A stretch of DNA of 63,654 bases, filler included, from Reticulomyxa filosa (taxonomy: Eukaryota > Protista > Foraminifera), in the NCBI GenBank assembly GCA_000512085.1. It is 12 parts of 12 records of this genome, joined end to end, with 100 filler letters (N's around TTAATTAATTAA, not from the genome) between each part and the next. Parts side by side here need not be neighbours in the genome. Positions count along the whole stretch, not along the records: positions 1 to 12,998 come from ASPP01010136.1; 11 more parts are not named here. One strand, given 5' to 3'. The translations under genes were made by a program, and so were the position numbers. Positions 1,740 through 9,295 of this stretch are shown here, piece after piece. The notes below the pieces were generated by a model. It saw nothing but the letters and a program-made list of their open reading frames with translations, made no database searches and had not been told where the DNA came from. Positions within the stretch are counted from its first letter, which is position 1. Every line of letters begins with the position of its first letter.

Positions 1740-4154
1740 ATGGACATAATTTATGAATATACTCGAAAAAGAAAAGAGTTTGGCAAACATTCCAATCTGT
1801 CTGATGTTGCCACGATGGAAATTTGCAATATTGCACCGACAGAGACTTTCAAAGAGCAATGGAAAATCAAACCATCAACTACACTCAATATTGATTGCAT
1901 TCCTGCTGTTTCCGAACATGAGGTTGTGAAAGAGTCTTTTTAAGGGCGAAAACAGCTAAACAAATACGGAACAATAAGGACATAACGATATAATTCTAGG
2001 TAAATACAGAGCAATTTATTCAAGTGGATCGAGGAATGCAACATTTAGAAGGAGGATGGCCAAAAGAAGTAAATGTGGAAGACTTCAGCGACAAACAAAG
2101 GAATATCCGCAAAATTGAAATGGACGAATCTTTTCAAGAAGTACTATCTGAGCTGACAAAAAGAGCTCAAGAGTGTGTCATGCAAAACAATGCAATCAAT
2201 ATGTTTGAAGAATATTTTGCCGAAAGTAAACATGGCCACTCCAGCGAACCTCCCAAGGCAAAAACTCTGACGATATTGAGGTACGAATACGTCAATATTG
2301 TTTGACTCTATTTTTTTGTTTTGATCGTTGCTGCTGAAATATCTTACGCTTATAATGGCGATGATATGACAATATTGAAAATGAAATGACAGAGATCCCA
2401 ATCAAACCTCAAGAAGTGTTGCCAAAATGGCGTGGCATCCTGACAGTTCCAATAAAATAGCTGTTGCTCATGCATCCCTAAAGTTTCAAGGAATGAATGA
2501 ATCCACACCATTGGCATCGTACATATGGGATATCAACAATCCAAACAGACCTGAAACAGTCTTATTGCCTCAATCACACTTATGCTGTGTAGCATTCAAC
2601 AAAAAATCACCGGAGCAATTAGTTGGGGGATGCTATAATGGACTGATAGGTGTGTACATATATGCACCATTTTCAAGCATAAAAATAAGCCTTCAAAACC
2701 AACAGGGTTTTGGGATTTGAGACGAGGATCCCATCCTGTAGAAAAAACAGTTATCGAACATTCTCACAATGATCCCGTGTATGATGTATTTTGGATTCAA
2801 TCCAGAACAGGATCAGAGGTTATTTTTTTTTTTTTAAGTTTTTTTTGATCAATCACTTTTTCTTTGCTCTCTTTTTAAAAAAATGTGGGTTTTTGGGCCT
2901 TGCCAGTTTGCATCTGTGTCCACTGATGGTTACATGCATTGGTGGGACGTCCGCAAATTAGGTAGCGGACCTATGGACTCGATGCTACTAAAAGATGAAA
3001 CCGGGAAAATATATGGAGGCACTGCTTTGGAGTATCGCACAGACGCTGGGGTAAATAATCACTTTTTTACACTTTTTTTTGCCTCTATTTATTTTATCAT
3101 ATATGTGTATATATTCACTTATTCATAATGTAACTTGTTTTGCTACGTATAACTTGTAATTCAGGCAACACGATTTTTAGTAGGAACAGAACAAGGAACA
3201 ATCATAACTGTAGAACGCAAAGCAAAAAAGGATGGCGATTCACAAAAACAAATAAAAATGATTTATGGGTTGGAAGAAGGCAGTAAACATCATGCACCTA
3301 TTTACGCAATTGAACGGTCTTTTTTTCTTTCGGTGCAAGAGTTAGTACAAAGCGTCTCAAGTGTATATTTTAACTTTTTTGTTGTGTTGTTGGCATTGTT
3401 TACCCATAGAAATTATTTCGTCCCGAAAGGAATTCTAACTATCGGAGATTGGGCTTCTCGATTATGGATGGAAGACGTTCGATCACCGGTGATGACAAGT
3501 CGCTATGAGAACGATTTCCTTACTTGTGGATGTTGGAGTCCTACTCGTGCAGGAGTATTTTTCATTACAAAACAAGATGGACAATTGGATGTTTGGGATT
3601 ATTGCTACAAACAGTCTGATCCAGTTTATCAATTAAAGGTTTGATGTTTAGAATTTCAACTTTTCTTTCAAACTTTACGCTCGTCAAACAAAAAAATTCT
3701 AGATATCGGAACATCCATTAACATCAATCAGTGTTCAAGGACAAGGGAAATTAGTCGCGCTGGGCGGAAATGATGGCACAGTAACAATTTTGGAGCTGTC
3801 CAATTCGTTGTGTGAGCCGTCGGCACAAGAGAAGGCAATTGTGAATCAAATATTTGAGCGCGAAATGAGCAGAGAAAAGAATTTACAGGCCCGTCTGTTA
3901 GCACAAAAGAGACAAAAGACTATGGCAAAAAAGCCATCAGATACACACAAAGTTTGGATTTTTCTTTAAAGCTAGATTTTATAAATTTGCTGTTACTGAT
4001 AATCACACAACAAAAACAGGAAGAAAAAAAAGAAAATGAAAACACTCAAATTGATTTCGCAGCAGTTGAGGCGGAATTTTTGGACGTTGTAGAAAAAAAT
4101 AAACCGAAATTTTCTAACACTAATTTTCAAAATACAAACATAAATCAAAACTAA
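1740..4154 (+). CDS. DNAI2: Axonemal outer-arm dynein intermediate chain 2 (IC69/ODA6-type, WD40), multi-exon
   Basis: N-terminus MDIIYEYTRKRKEFGK, then HLEGGWPKEV, MQNNAINMFEEYF, AWHPD, GGCYNG, STDG..WWDVRKL and WSPTRAGVFF..DGQLDVWD are motifs diagnostic of DNAI2. Short GT-AG introns link the ORF pieces. Confidence 0.9.
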
Positions 4155-4550
4155 ATTATTTATACTTTGCTGGGTTCGATAACAAAGTACATAACAGAAT
4201 ATCTTTTTTTTAAGTTCCTTTCGTATTACACATAGTCGTTTCACTATTGCTACACTGAACAAAGTGCTTGCTGTCTTAATATTAAACAGCAAAACTTCTT
4301 GTGGACAATATAAAAATTTAATTATTTTATATGTTTAATGATGCAACTATTGATTATCGTGACAAATATTTTTGAAAAATCTTCATTTTATCATAACTAA
4401 ATTTCACCAATTGATAAAGATTTTCTCACTAACATTTTCTCCACTTCACAAATAATATTATCTATCACATTAGTCATAAAGATAATAAATTGAGACTAAT
4501 TTGAAAAATGGTCAAAAAAAATGAAATGTTATATCACAATTTTTAAACTT

Positions 4551-4588
4551 TAAAATTTTCTATGGATTTTTCTGCAAAAAAAATATTT
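4551..4588 (+). repeat. Left copy of an imperfect ~37-bp direct repeat (candidate target-site duplication)
   Basis: taaaattttctatggatttttctgcaaaaaaaatattt. The core GATTTTTCTGCAA (4565-4577) is identical to 7429-7441. Confidence 0.55.
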
Positions 4589-4889
4589 ACAGGTTTTCAG
4601 GAAAACGTAATGCAATTATTAAATTAAAGAACGAAAATGTAAACAATCACTATATCAGTCAAACGACGGATTTAACAAAAGCAAACTAACAAGCTAGACT
4701 TAAAAATGAAAGAAAAGAAAAGAAAAACAAATATAAAAATAAAGAAATAAGAATTAAAACACAACAAAACGAAAAATTGGAAATTTTGTTGTATTTTGCT
4801 TAAGTATTGAAATAAATGATTAATAATGTAAAAGTGGTTAAAAGTTGGAATTTTGAATTTCGAACAATTATTTTAAACATCTTCATGTT

Positions 4890-6190
4890 TACCGACAATG
4901 CGTTCAAATATCCAAAGATTTCCTTTTTGGATTGCAACAATAATCTTTTGGCATAAGATTCTTTTGGCGTCTGGTACTGTTCTATTTTCTTTATCTGACA
5001 GTACATTCGCGACTTTGTCAAAGAAGTCCTTGGCCTTCTTATGACAACATCATATCGTTTACGCCACAAGCGGGACGTAGGACATATTTTGATTGATGCA
5101 CTTTTTTTGAGACTTACTGTTCTTGTGAGCATAATACCGCTCGGCCGCCTGGAGGCGTTAATTCGATTGATTGACTATGTAGTTGTGTAATTCAAACGTC
5201 GAACAAGGTATTGTCATTAGGATCATCGAACCACTTCATCATAATGCCCACATGACGATATTTACTGATGTAGACAATTCATTATTCAAATCGATGCGAG
5301 AGTCAATCACATTTGATGAGGTTGGAGATACATGCTACTACGCGATCGTAGAGGGAGATTATTCCATTCACATGAACACAAGTCAGTGAGTGGTCCCCGT
5401 GGGTATCAATTTCTTTGTCGCAACTCCCACCCCCCGTAGCAGATGCAGTCAACGGAGACGTCTTGTGATAGCCGAAGACGAAGGACAGTCTAATATTCAC
5501 GATTATCGAGCGTTGTTTGTTAGAATTTGTTAGGTGGCGCGTGCAAATAGGCAGAAGATTGGTTGACGGACAATGAGGCGAGCATTGCTTTGACACGAGG
5601 GCTAGCACTGCATGTGAAAGAATGGAAGGCGTGCGAGGTGACGTGCCGCGACAAGTAGGTATTTTTCTGGATTGAGCTTATTATCCTGATCGACTTGCTT
5701 CATGTATTTGTGAATTGAATTGTGAGATGGCTTCGTTAAGTTCTTCACTTTAGTCAATTCGTTTATTTGCGTATTTGCGTGAATAGATGGCAAGATGCGA
5801 GCGGCAGCCACAACAGGATATAAAGGATGAGCTGGAGTATTTTTGGATCGTGCGAAATCAAAAACCACCTTGTTTGATGGGAAGCTGTCATTGTTGACAA
5901 TGGATCATGGATAGTACGGCCAAGAGTGTACTCCATGTATTTGCGAATACTGACATAAAATCTATTAAATATTGCCGTCATGTGTCCGCAAAATTTGCTC
6001 GTATGAAGAAATTAATATTGGATAACTAAATGGAGTTGCGAAGAAGTAGAAAGGCTGACTGGTGATGCTGAAGTTGGTATATTTTTTCAAATTGCTGCTG
6101 CCAAAGTTCTGCTTTTTGGTTCATTATGCTTTCTCTATGTGTTTCATCTACCACGGGGGTGCTAACAATTTATGTGTTGAAAGTGGTGTT
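4890..6190 (-). mobile_element. Decayed CRE-like (RLE-clade) non-LTR retrotransposon: RT C-terminus/thumb, CCHC knuckle and restriction-like endonuclease
   Basis: Minus-strand translation across stops and frameshifts gives, in order: QSAFLLLRNS (~6032-6061), QLPIKQGGF (~5862-5888), CDKEIDTHGDHSLTC..GIISLYDRVV (~5335-5422), RHVGI...LFDV (~5195-5257), AAERYYAHKNSK, YVPLVA*TI*..AKDFFDKVA (~5015-5080) and LCQKIIVAIQKGN (~4918-4956). This is the conserved C-terminal motif order of CRE/RLE retroelements. Confidence 0.85.
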
Positions 6191-6234
6191 GTGTGGAATA
6201 TATTCAAATGCAGTATGGTGATGAATATTAACTG

Positions 6235-7030
6235 AAGAGATCCACTAAATCTTGCAGAGGTTTATTTGCATACTATGATATTATTTGATTGTTGTGAGTG
6301 ACGTCAATGCTATGGACAATGTGAACTGAATTTGAAGACAAGATGCCTACTCGAAGAGGTTGGTTTTACCGCTGTCGCTGCGATGTGCGAAGCATTCCTA
6401 ATTCGACGTATTATTTCGTGTACCGAAACATTGTTGGAGATTGTAAGCTGCGAAAGGTATGCTGGATCTGTATTTGTCATTGTAATTTTATTTTCATATG
6501 AAGACGCTTCTATGTTTTTTTTCTTTGATAGGTCGAACTGCTGGATCCTGGATATGTTATTATCATATAGCTCAACAGTTGAAAGTGACAATGTGGTTGT
6601 AGCTGCATGCGTGTTATTGGACAAAAAATTTATAACGTATGCGAGTATTGCATTAGTTTGACTATCCGGTATTTTGGAGTATCCATAAATGGAAAAAGAT
6701 TTGCCAGGACCCGTTTGCCTAAAGGTAAGCATTCACATAGCGGCGTTATAATCATGTTACTAACTTGCATGTTGGATGACTATGGAAGAAATACTTGATC
6801 AGATGATTATGAGCTGCAACTGCCAAATGTGATACCAATCGACGTTGTTATCTGTTTGCAATCTGTTTTTACAAAATTTTGTTTGAAATGAAAATATTTG
6901 ATGGTTTTATGAGGCAAAATAGCTTGATGGGACATGTTGTTGAGGATATTGAGCTTCGATTTGCCGATCGGGAATATGCTCCTTAGTACAATTGAATTGA
7001 TAGTACAGTTTTTGGGTATGCGTACAAAGG
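6235..7030 (-). pseudogene. Degenerate kinesin motor-domain sequence with no evident introns
   Basis: DQVFLP*SSNMQV..IITPL (~6750-6800), P-loop-like QTGPGKSFSIYG (~6682-6717; cf. GQTGSGKS), LSTVELYDN (cf. SxLEIYNE), AATAVKPTSSSRHLVF (cf. switch I NxxSSRSH) and a frameshifted INLC-DL-GS (~6238-6265; cf. DLAGSE). Confidence 0.75.
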
Positions 7031-7415
7031 GTGAGACAAATCATTTCCGACATTGCACGATAATGCAGACGAAGACTGTAAAAATAAATAAACGATCACT
7101 GACATGTATTGAATTGGTTCTTCGGCATCAATAATATAACTATTTTCATGGTTTCGACAATGATAAAAAAAATTGTTATAAACAATTTCTTTGTTGCATC
7201 TGCAAAATGTTCTTAAAAAGTCTTATAAACTTCGCTCGCACGCAATAATGTCAAAGGTTGTTTGAACTTCTTGACGCATCACAAGACTGAACTTGTTGCA
7301 AGTTTTTCGAATGCAACATACTTGAAGTTGCTAAAAATAATATTCAAAAATGAATACTGCACTTAAACTACAACACAACTAAATGACCGTTAAACAAAAA
7401 TGTAAATGATTTTTT

Positions 7416-7451
7416 TAAATTTCATATTGATTTTTCTGCAACAAAATATTT
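7416..7451 (+). repeat. Right copy of the imperfect direct repeat (candidate TSD)
   Basis: taaatttcatattgatttttctgcaacaaaatattt matches 4551-4588. Confidence 0.55.
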
Positions 7452-8094
7452 GTCTGTTTTTTGTCAAACAGTTGACTTTTAAACCTAAGTTTTTATGCCT
7501 TACGAACATTATTTTTGCATGAAATAAAAATTAAATTTGAACTAACTCACTTGATAAAAATTTGTTCACCAGCACAATGTGCCGGTGAATATATTTTTTT
7601 CATTTTCTGTTTTTCCCAATGGACTTAGTTCAATTTAATTTTTTATATGTTATTTTAAAGTTATGCTTTTTTTTTTATTGAAAATGTTGAATCTTTTTTA
7701 ATTACTAGATTTATGAGTTTGGTAAATATTTTACATTATTTGACAAAAATGTGATTATGTATTGTGTTGTTATAAGGCGCAGTATTTTTTTTAGCTTATC
7801 ACTGCGTCGTGCAATTTTTTATTATTGAAAAGATTGTTTAAATATTTTTTTTTTGCTTGTTTTTTAAAAGTGAATAAACATCAAAGTGTCATCAATTAAA
7901 GAGGGTGATAAGCGTTTAGTTGAAAGAGTTGGCAGTCTGATAAAATCTTAAGTGCAATAAATCAAAAGGTGTTGAAGAATGACTATCTTCGAGATTTTAA
8001 CTCAAATTGCATTGGTAAGCTTCATTTCAATTTTTTCTAAACCTTGTTAATTGTTTTTATTATGTTTATTGTGTGATCTATGATCGGATCAGTC

Positions 8095-8460
8095 AGAAGA
8101 AGAGATTTAAATCATTGTTGAAAATTGGATTAGAATTTTAAAAATTAAGTTAGGATGGACCTAAAATTTTGGCAGACCTATTCGATTCAATGTTTAATTG
8201 TCATCAATATATCTGTTTTAGGTCAGATAGTAACACAGTTCGTATGTGATTTAGATACTAACAAACTCATACAATCATTCAATAAACATGCAACAGCTGT
8301 AAATTGTGTAAAACTTTCATCATATCTTTATCAAAATCATCGTCGTAATTTCATTTGCTTTTCATCTGCTGACAAAATCATGCGTTTTTGGGATATTGAA
8401 CATAATACTGTTCGTGGTATTGAGTTTTCATCATTTAATGGTGATAAATATTTGTGTTCT
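8095..8460 (+). pseudogene. WD40-repeat family pseudogene fragment
   Basis: EEEI*IIVENWIRILKIKLGW followed by degraded WD40 repeats (FNKHATAVNCVK, SSADKIMRFWDIE, FSSFNGDKYLCS) resembling the intact gene at 22570-23808. Contains stops and deletions. Confidence 0.75.
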
Positions 8461-8464
8461 TTAC

Positions 8465-8791
8465 TTTCTTTTACTTTTGTCTTTATGCGCTATTTCTATC
8501 TTAGATGTGTGGGCGTACTTGTTCTCAAGTTTAGCGTCTGTAGGGCAAGCCCTTGTCACACATGGCTGAACGCCTATGGAACTGAGGAGCTCCCTTTGGG
8601 TTAAACCTCCTCAACAAACTACCTCTTACTTGTTTTCTCTTACTTCTTTTGTCTTCTGATTTATTCTTTAATTTACTTTGTTTACTGAAAGTCGCTCTCA
8701 TTGAGAGTAACACTCTTTCGTATTACATTTAGTGAAGCTCTTCACTGTAGACTCCCCACACGTCTTTGACACATTGCGTCTATAAAAAAAA
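8465..8791. repeat. Possible inserted repeat or mobile-element fragment interrupting the WD40 pseudogene
   Basis: WD40 homology ends abruptly at ~8460. A compositionally distinct segment follows and ends in CTATAAAAAAAA. Confidence 0.3.
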
Positions 8792-9295
8792 TTAACATTT
8801 TTTCAAAATTTTTTTAAAAATAAGTATGATTCGTAAACTTTCCAAATATTTTTTCAAAAAGATTGTGTTTGCTTTCCAACGAAAAGCGAACATATATGAA
8901 GAAAATTCAAAGATAAATATACACCAAACGAACACTAGATATTTGGACTTACAAGTAATGTTATTTTGGAAATTGTATCTATGGTTCATTGAGAGATTTT
9001 TGCTTCTCCACACACATCATGCAAGCTAGCTTTAGTTAATAGCACCCTTCATTTTGGACATCATTGTTATTTCAAGATGACATCAGCGACGGTTTGTCAC
9101 TTATCGATGAAGATACAGACATGAAAGATCAAAATTGAAAAGATAAAAAAAAACTGCATTTAATACCAGTTTAAAACTATTTGTAATTTTTTACTGCATA
9201 ACGCAAGAGAGGGCAGAACATTTTTTTAGAAGACATACAAAACCGACATCTTTTAAACATTTCTCCCTTTCTCACAGTACAATAAACAAGGATGT

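Follow-up and report, generated by a model that had tools for sequence, protein, structure and literature searches.

How did a kinesin motor come to lie directly upstream of retroelement sequence, on the same strand and within long direct repeats, in the DNA of Reticulomyxa filosa, a foraminiferan? The locus that raises this question occupies the minus strand at positions 4549-7528 of the window, meaning here the whole 63,654-nucleotide stretch of R. filosa DNA that was analysed, and belongs to contig C10136 of a genome assembly of 101.9 Mb in 50,809 contigs. The explanation proposed, to which we assign a probability of about 0.9, is that it represents an old, dead and internally deleted copy of an R. 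filosa family of non-long-terminal-repeat (non-LTR) retrotransposons of the restriction-like endonuclease (RLE) type (R2/CRE-like), whose members bear a captured kinesin motor that co-diverged with the rest of the element and was kept under selection. The original prediction, made on this DNA alone, had already suggested that the locus stems from an element family with a motor of its own and has suffered an internal deletion, and loci in which kinesin, reverse transcriptase (RT) and RLE are collinear have now been found across the genome.

The window copy was aligned using as queries the intact open reading frames (ORFs) of contig C27115 (locus L005). Residues 200-426 of the L005 kinesin ORF match window positions 7022-6334 in tblastn, covering FNRVF/'DQVF', RQTGPGKS, VELYDN and SSSRH. 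In addition, a window ORF at 6310-6732 (minus strand) matches the Pfam Kinesin family PF00225 (E 3.7e-8; 33.2 bits, with a cut-off of 29.3 bits; profile positions 79-208) and positions 86-214 of a kinesin-seed hidden Markov model (HMM) match the motor remnant at E 5e-24. The kinesin motifs originally named (DQVF, QTGPGKS, VELYDN, SSSRH) are confirmed by these matches. The retroelement motifs stand as well, as residues 629-1099 of the L005 RT-RLE ORF align to window 6322-4918 (tblastn, E 1e-78), a span including AFLLLRN, LPIKQGG, CDKEIDTHGDHSLTC, a decayed RPGD...FDV, VPLVA*T and QKIIVAIQKGN. Two details had to be corrected: the string 'DL-GS' (~6235-6300), read as kinesin switch II, falls within RT-homologous sequence, and the junction between kinesin and RT, placed at 6190-6240, is located at ~6334/6322.

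Read 5' to 3' on the minus strand, the locus begins with a ~55-nt flanking repeat, segment A (7477-7528; positions 125-177 of the L005 repeat unit, 77% identity by blastn), which represents the target sequence proper or a duplicate of it made on insertion and which also precedes the 5' B repeat in C20365, C211, C2622, C13572 and C14715. It is followed by the 5' copy of a ~120-nt terminal direct repeat, B (7392-7461; unit positions 14-86, motif TGCAGAAAAATC.ATA..AAATTT, 82% identity to the L005 unit), and by a decayed 5' leader and N-terminal coding region (7023-7391) which, as DNA, aligns with the corresponding 5' parts of L005 and L011; the tblastn match of residues 200-300 of the L005 kinesin ORF starts at 7022. 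The kinesin remnant proper (6334-7022; PF00225, tblastn, HMM) comprises the N-terminal ~60% of the motor, with P-loop RQTGPGKS and switch I SSSRH, and ends at the internal deletion junction (6322-6334), where adjoining tblastn pieces pass from kinesin residue 426, ending at 6334, to RT-ORF residue 629, starting at 6322. Compared with L005, ~2.4 kb are absent: the C-terminal half of the kinesin (switch II and all motor sequence beyond it), the linker, the zinc finger and the RT up to residue ~628 of the L005 RT ORF, so that only the last ~70 residues of the RT are left. Positions 5574-6322 cover the last part of the RT palm together with the thumb and a linker (AFLLLRN, LPIKQGG; L005 residues 629-~880, 36% identity, many stops), and 4873-5573 holds the CCHC knuckle (CDKEIDTHGDHSLTC), the RLE and a conserved C-terminal helix (QKGN), matching L005 residues ~880-1099 at 45-60% identity, with the decayed CCHC-RLE at 5573-4912 and the end of the ORF at ~4873. 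A 3' untranslated region (UTR; 4628-4872), with a CGTTTT...AAAAC block that L005 and L013 also have in their 3' UTRs, leads to the 3' copy of repeat B (4549-4627; unit positions -16 to 65, exact motif at 4553-4576); no segment A was detected downstream of this repeat. The long direct repeats noticed at the outset (4549-4597 and 7413-7461; 49 nt, 76% identity) are thus part of a unit that recurs genome-wide and of the architecture of the element. Several frameshifts and 20 in-frame stops are found in the aligned pieces, which are spread over at least three reading frames in tblastn with the L005 ORFs; the copy is therefore long dead, and its two halves are, as predicted, equally decayed.

Full-length relatives of this remnant are present elsewhere in the genome. 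When the retroelement and kinesin pieces of the window were searched separately, both queries found the same contigs, on the same strand and with kinesin upstream, and the L005 ORFs gave the same result; the further loci with kinesin ahead of RT-RLE that had been anticipated do exist. Among the loci retrieved, probing by tblastn with four domains detected collinear kinesin, zinc finger, RT and RLE in L001, L005-L008, L010, L014-L017, L026, L029 and L031, and the kinesin-RT fusion is found in no fewer than 15 loci, which belong to four diverged lineages. The ORF of the family is composed of an N-terminal extension, the kinesin motor, a low-complexity linker, a putative C2H2-like zinc finger, the RT, the CCHC knuckle and the RLE, in that order. 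The continuous kinesin-RT-RLE frame that had been envisaged occurs in C25516 (L001), a single open frame of 1831 aa with Kinesin at aa 307-614 (E 7e-11) and RVT_1 at aa 1178-1394 (E 9e-19). In C29371 (L014) an uninterrupted frame of 1379 aa extends to where the contig ends and contains both Pfam domains, and in L005 a 702-aa kinesin ORF (Kinesin E 2e-25) overlaps the 1108-aa RT-RLE ORF through a single frameshift. Pfam Kinesin bit scores are 90 for L005, 42 for L001 and 33 for the window piece.

Copies of the family are numerous. Element-type kinesin was located in ~45 contigs using group-specific kinesin queries, with host genes of the donor family set aside, and an RT query of the genome gave at least 50 RT-family matches (42 candidates scored of 387), many of them decayed, 5'-truncated or internally deleted; isolated 3' tails of the element are abundant. 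Internal deletions were recognized with the domain probes in the window copy, L018 and L031. The last two (C732, 1843-2783, and C6809, 1829-4898, respectively) retain the kinesin N-terminus and the RLE with breakpoints unlike those of the window copy; deletion derivatives recur. Members of the family are also present in public databases under other names: PF00225 and PF00078 are both present in the deposited protein RFI_29435, for which the given name is 'hypothetical' ('C2H2-type domain-containing protein' in UniRef), and the transposon ORF of C2760 (L006, 1-3627) was deposited as 'kinesin family member 4, partial' (ETO34218.1).

The type of retroelement is indicated by its RT and C-terminal domains. 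Pfam RVT_1 is matched at E 1e-18 to 3e-20 in L001-L003 and L005, the RT motif YHDD is conserved and so are the RLE motifs. The solved relatives of the RT are R2 proteins only (best R2Bm 8gh6 and R2Tg 9nl3), R2 being the sole RLE clade represented in the PDB. Among 11 sequences, the C-terminal 250 aa conserve C..C..D..GDH...C, RH, E, RPGD, D.GIT and K..K and end in the helix LQKGNA, and these motifs are shared with three distant RT proteins of other organisms. An AlphaFold model of the L005 C-terminal domain (predicted local distance difference test, pLDDT, 80.7; predicted template modelling score, pTM, 0.81) has R2 proteins as its top seven PDB matches (9dou; template modelling score, TM, 0.61; E 7e-5), followed by PD-(D/E)XK cap-snatching nucleases and Prp8, and in this way the fold bears out the RLE identity deduced earlier from motifs. 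Upstream of the RT a C-x4-C-x12-H-x3-H pattern is conserved, for which Pfam zf-C2H2 gives a weak match (E 0.35); the N-terminal Cys-rich region together with the zinc finger had no significant match in Pfam. On the basis of the R2-like RT, the conserved CCHC/RLE motifs and the R2-like C-terminal model, the family is an RLE-type (R2 supergroup) non-LTR element, and it may be CRE-like in the narrower sense of the original prediction. Its closest RT-RLE relative outside R. filosa (P0005; ENA, 669-kb contig) is a protein of 1722 aa with 25% identity that combines ankyrin repeats with RVT_1 and is thus another RLE-type element or a gene with an unusual extra domain.

The kinesins of the elements form four groups, each of which matches an RT clade, in an RT tree with a poorly supported backbone; motor and RT have diverged in step in at least four lineages of the element. 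Group G1, of the C33883/C35467 type, has canonical motifs (GQTGSGKT, SSRVH, DCAGSE). G2, to which the window copy belongs, has (G/R)QTG.GKS, SSRGH and DLASSE or DLASFSGE and a divergent L11/alpha-4 region. G3 retained the P-loop and lost switch II, and G4, exemplified by C25516, lost the P-loop, switch I and switch II with its ORF still intact. The ratio of nonsynonymous to synonymous substitution rates (dN/dS) of the kinesin domain is 0.17 for the pair L001-L007 (0.09 for the RT of the same pair), 0.16 for L027-L019, 0.085 for L001-L030 and 0.28 for L014-L031, and synonymous sites are saturated across the four lineages. These low values indicate that the motor domain has been under purifying selection on active lineages, including G4, which is dead as an ATPase. 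The youngest pairs are near neutral (kinesin dN/dS ~0.7-0.8), as post-insertion decay predicts. PDB sequence matches of the element motor are all kinesins, and the model of the G4 domain (pLDDT 80.6) has as top PDB matches the motors of kinesin-1, -3 and -5 (E 1e-16), with low confidence exactly at the P-loop and switch I positions; the G4 domain is thus predicted to fold still as a kinesin motor.

The source of this motor was sought by comparing it with host kinesins. With a kinesin HMM on six-frame translations, element motors appear as single continuous matches, whereas those of 19 host kinesins are distributed over 2-4 exons. When 20 motors from elements were placed in a tree with 19 from the host and 5 external ones, the element domains all fell on one side of a branch with a Shimodaira-Hasegawa-like approximate likelihood ratio test (SH-aLRT) support of 100. 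A word-based protein search with the L005 motor returned weak ordinary kinesins and nothing closer. An exhaustive profile search of 1.84 billion representatives revealed ~35 proteins that stand out as a shoulder, with E from 1e-74 to 1e-45, whereas kinesins in general level off at ~1e-24. This family (P0016-P0050) includes a protein of the foraminiferan Bolivina argentea (P0018) as well as proteins of environmental protists, and consists of cellular kinesins 400-1000 aa in length that lack an RT and combine a motor at the N-terminus with a tail of coiled-coil or EF-hand type. The Bolivina protein identifies in R. filosa intron-split host genes at 44-54% identity, situated at C16037:1683-3006 (three consecutive exons), C7360:718-1467, C2657:2273-2713 and C8097:3832-4275. 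The divergent family is weakly similar to the classical kinesin-5, -4 and -1 families. When the 34 top profile matches were added to the tree, element motors and divergent family formed one clade (SH-aLRT 100) apart from other kinesins, and the idiosyncratic motifs GKNP.SSRGH, DCAGSEGES and LEAG.IN.GLSQLQ are common to the G1 motors and this family. Most simply, the motor was captured, probably once, from a processed (intron-less) transcript of the divergent host kinesin family.

The ends of the element were examined in G2 copies, which are bracketed by a ~170-nt repeated unit in the arrangement A (55 nt), B (~120 nt, motif TGCAGAAAAATCCATAGGAAATTT), ORF, 3' UTR, B, A. All A and B segments around these copies are in direct orientation and the sequence outside A is unique. 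In L005 the unit is found at 3650-3830 and 9119-9176, and its B copy on the 5' side is 95% identical to that on the 3' side; in C20365 the repeats lie 6.3 kb from each other. The B-repeat motif occurs 19 times in the genome (0 for a reversed control), and coordinate tables of the matches show both B-A-B junctions and A-only sites, among the latter C18754, C12891 and C14533. This organization agrees with an element that has B as its terminal direct repeats and would insert at a specific 55-bp target A and duplicate it; alternatively, the insertion target may be a short satellite. In the ~170-nt unit Rfam found nothing near threshold, and its RNA fold is no better than those of shuffled sequences (z = 0.81). 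With regard to the surroundings of these copies, a weak WD40-repeat exon lies at window 8155-8604 (plus strand; Pfam E 0.004), ~630 bp off the 5' flank of the element, and was the only Pfam match, itself weak, among the window ORFs flanking it; this places the element between or inside host genes, outside any repeat desert. Next to the full element of L005, a second G2 kinesin fragment is found 1.4 kb downstream on the opposite strand (1854-2301, plus strand) and is a separate broken copy. In L011 (C7929) a 388-aa open frame that is tubulin-like by eye (VDLEPNVIDE...) lies at 5436-6599 (plus strand), ~0.8 kb from a decayed G2 copy.

Could the window locus have arisen in another way? Its junction might be a single accident, in which a kinesin pseudogene came to lie beside an unrelated retroelement fragment or the assembly joined them wrongly, as might be suggested by the abrupt border between kinesin and RT pieces and by the short-read, fragmented nature of the assembly. 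However, each piece has its highest similarity to one and the same lineage (L005, G2), the two follow one another as they do in full-length copies, they are equally decayed, and the 5' and 3' terminal repeats of the element itself enclose them. On these grounds the adjacent-pseudogene reading was rejected; taken with the different breakpoints of the other internally deleted copies (L018, L031), they make an accident of either kind extremely improbable. A one-off template-switch chimera, the alternative offered by the original prediction, was likewise rejected, since the fusion is present in at least 15 loci of four lineages and kinesin groups match RT clades. Another view would take the fused genes for a domesticated host family, kinesins with an RT-RLE tail, and the window copy for one of its pseudogenes. 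The NCBI annotation of one copy as 'kinesin family member 4, partial' and the long intact ORFs under purifying selection speak in its favor, but the dispersed copies, dozens in number, show decay, 5' truncation or internal deletion, the copies have in common conserved 3' tails and flanking repeats of retroelement kind, the fused genes are intron-less as opposed to the intron-rich host kinesins, and the RT (YHDD) and RLE motifs are conserved. Domestication is accordingly given very little credence.

Several observations weigh against the explanation proposed, and some of them would favor instead a functionless passenger, captured once by template switching, tolerated and slowly decaying, an explanation that we consider unlikely. 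P-loop, switch I and switch II are lost by degrees across the lineages, up to the complete loss of the nucleotide-binding motifs in G4, and every G1 copy sampled is either interrupted by one or more stops or truncated where its contig ends. Moreover, a sister clade without any kinesin (L002-L004 and L009) has intact ORFs of ~1830 aa, and the motor is hence dispensable for the RT family overall. In L002 (C26421, 3251-5650) and L003 (C2783, 3-2402) the N-terminus is an 800-aa low-complexity region with repeats NIQQM/NIQQS and ETNEPNE and no Pfam match, and profile-profile comparison found no kinesin homology in the N-terminus of this kinesin-less subfamily B (probability 0.1); the clade either lost the motor or originally had none. 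To these points are added the lack of a detectable coiled-coil stalk after the motor, the presence of canonical kinesins in the alignment behind the G4 model, which biases it toward a kinesin fold, the support of 21 for monophyly of element kinesins with respect to the donor family, which leaves room for a second capture, and the high fragmentation of the assembly, which weakens confidence in junctions. A passenger is nevertheless difficult to reconcile with kinesin dN/dS of 0.09-0.28 even in the P-loop-less lineage, with frames of 1379-1831 aa that stay open through the kinesin domain, with the predicted retention of the kinesin fold and with the persistence of the domain through four lineages with saturated synonymous sites.

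If, as we favor, the motor is selected as part of the element, a role in intracellular transport can be proposed. The motor domain would tether the protein-RNA particle of the element to the dense microtubule arrays of the giant multinucleate cell, and in lineages with intact ATPase motifs it might even move the particle along microtubules. G1 and G2 motors, in which a neck-linker-like sequence follows alpha-6, could for that reason be active motors of plus-end type, and the G4 domain could serve as an ATP-independent, passive microtubule-binding module. Docking on microtubules would help the particle to reach nuclei, where the RLE would nick DNA and the RT would copy the RNA by target-primed reverse transcription. 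It is tentatively suggested, with somewhat less than even confidence, that a retrotransposon lineage acquired and maintains its own microtubule motor, that its particle travels or docks without hijacking host motors as an adaptation to a giant multinucleate, microtubule-packed cell, and that part of the kinesin expansion of R. filosa is transposon-borne.

Viruses and retroelements borrow host motors through adaptors. An element with a motor in its own ORF would, if true, represent a new intracellular trafficking strategy and extend the accessory domains of non-LTR retrotransposons by a new class. The gradation that the family offers in nature, with a canonical motor at one end and a version under selection that lacks ATPase motifs at the other, could show whether binding or stepping matters to the element. 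There are also consequences for the host. The kinesin expansion of R. filosa has been cited (PMC4758236; PMC13746701), and since some of the publicly annotated 'kinesin genes' of this organism are transposon ORFs, the reported expansion includes transposon-borne copies and the conclusions drawn from it need a re-count that excludes such ORFs (ETO34218.1, RFI_29435).

The family described here, RLE-type non-LTR retrotransposons with a captured kinesin domain kept under selection, appears to be new. No report of a kinesin borne by a retroelement was found in the full-text literature searched, a coverage outside which the R. filosa genome paper falls, and the word 'kinesin' is absent from a 2019 review of accessory domains in retrotransposons (PMC6338049). 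Shallow searches beyond R. filosa, which are no evidence of absence, gave, for the full-length query, RT relatives that lack kinesin and in one case bear ankyrin repeats, no RT in long proteins among the kinesin profile matches, and one 2.4-kb RT-only locus in a metagenome scan for kinesin-RT fusions.

Compared with the known RLE-type elements R2, R4, NeSL, CRE/SLACS/CZAR and Hero, the R. filosa family has in common the single ORF with a putative N-terminal zinc-finger region, RT, CCHC knuckle and C-terminal PD-(D/E)XK RLE, and differs from them by a 300-aa kinesin motor upstream of the zinc finger and by ~120-nt terminal direct repeats. SLACS, an element of the CRE clade, inserts site-specifically with a 49-bp target duplication, and the flanking repeats of the R. 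filosa family would be compatible with a similar site-specific insertion and long target duplication. The closest relatives of the element kinesins, with which they have signature motifs in common, are those of the divergent foraminiferan and protist family, which unlike them are cellular genes without RT and, in R. filosa, split by introns. Motor-dead kinesin homology domains are known from Vik1/Cik1 and KIF26, which bind microtubules without ATP hydrolysis; the G4 domain may be analogous in keeping a predicted kinesin fold without P-loop or switches under purifying selection, and differs in being part of a retrotransposon protein. Finally, the domains that other retrotransposons carry as accessories in their polyproteins (esterase, PHD, RNase H, chromodomain, proteases and others) are likewise host-derived, fused into the ORF and kept under selection, but the known ones include no cytoskeletal motor such as that carried by the R. 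filosa family.

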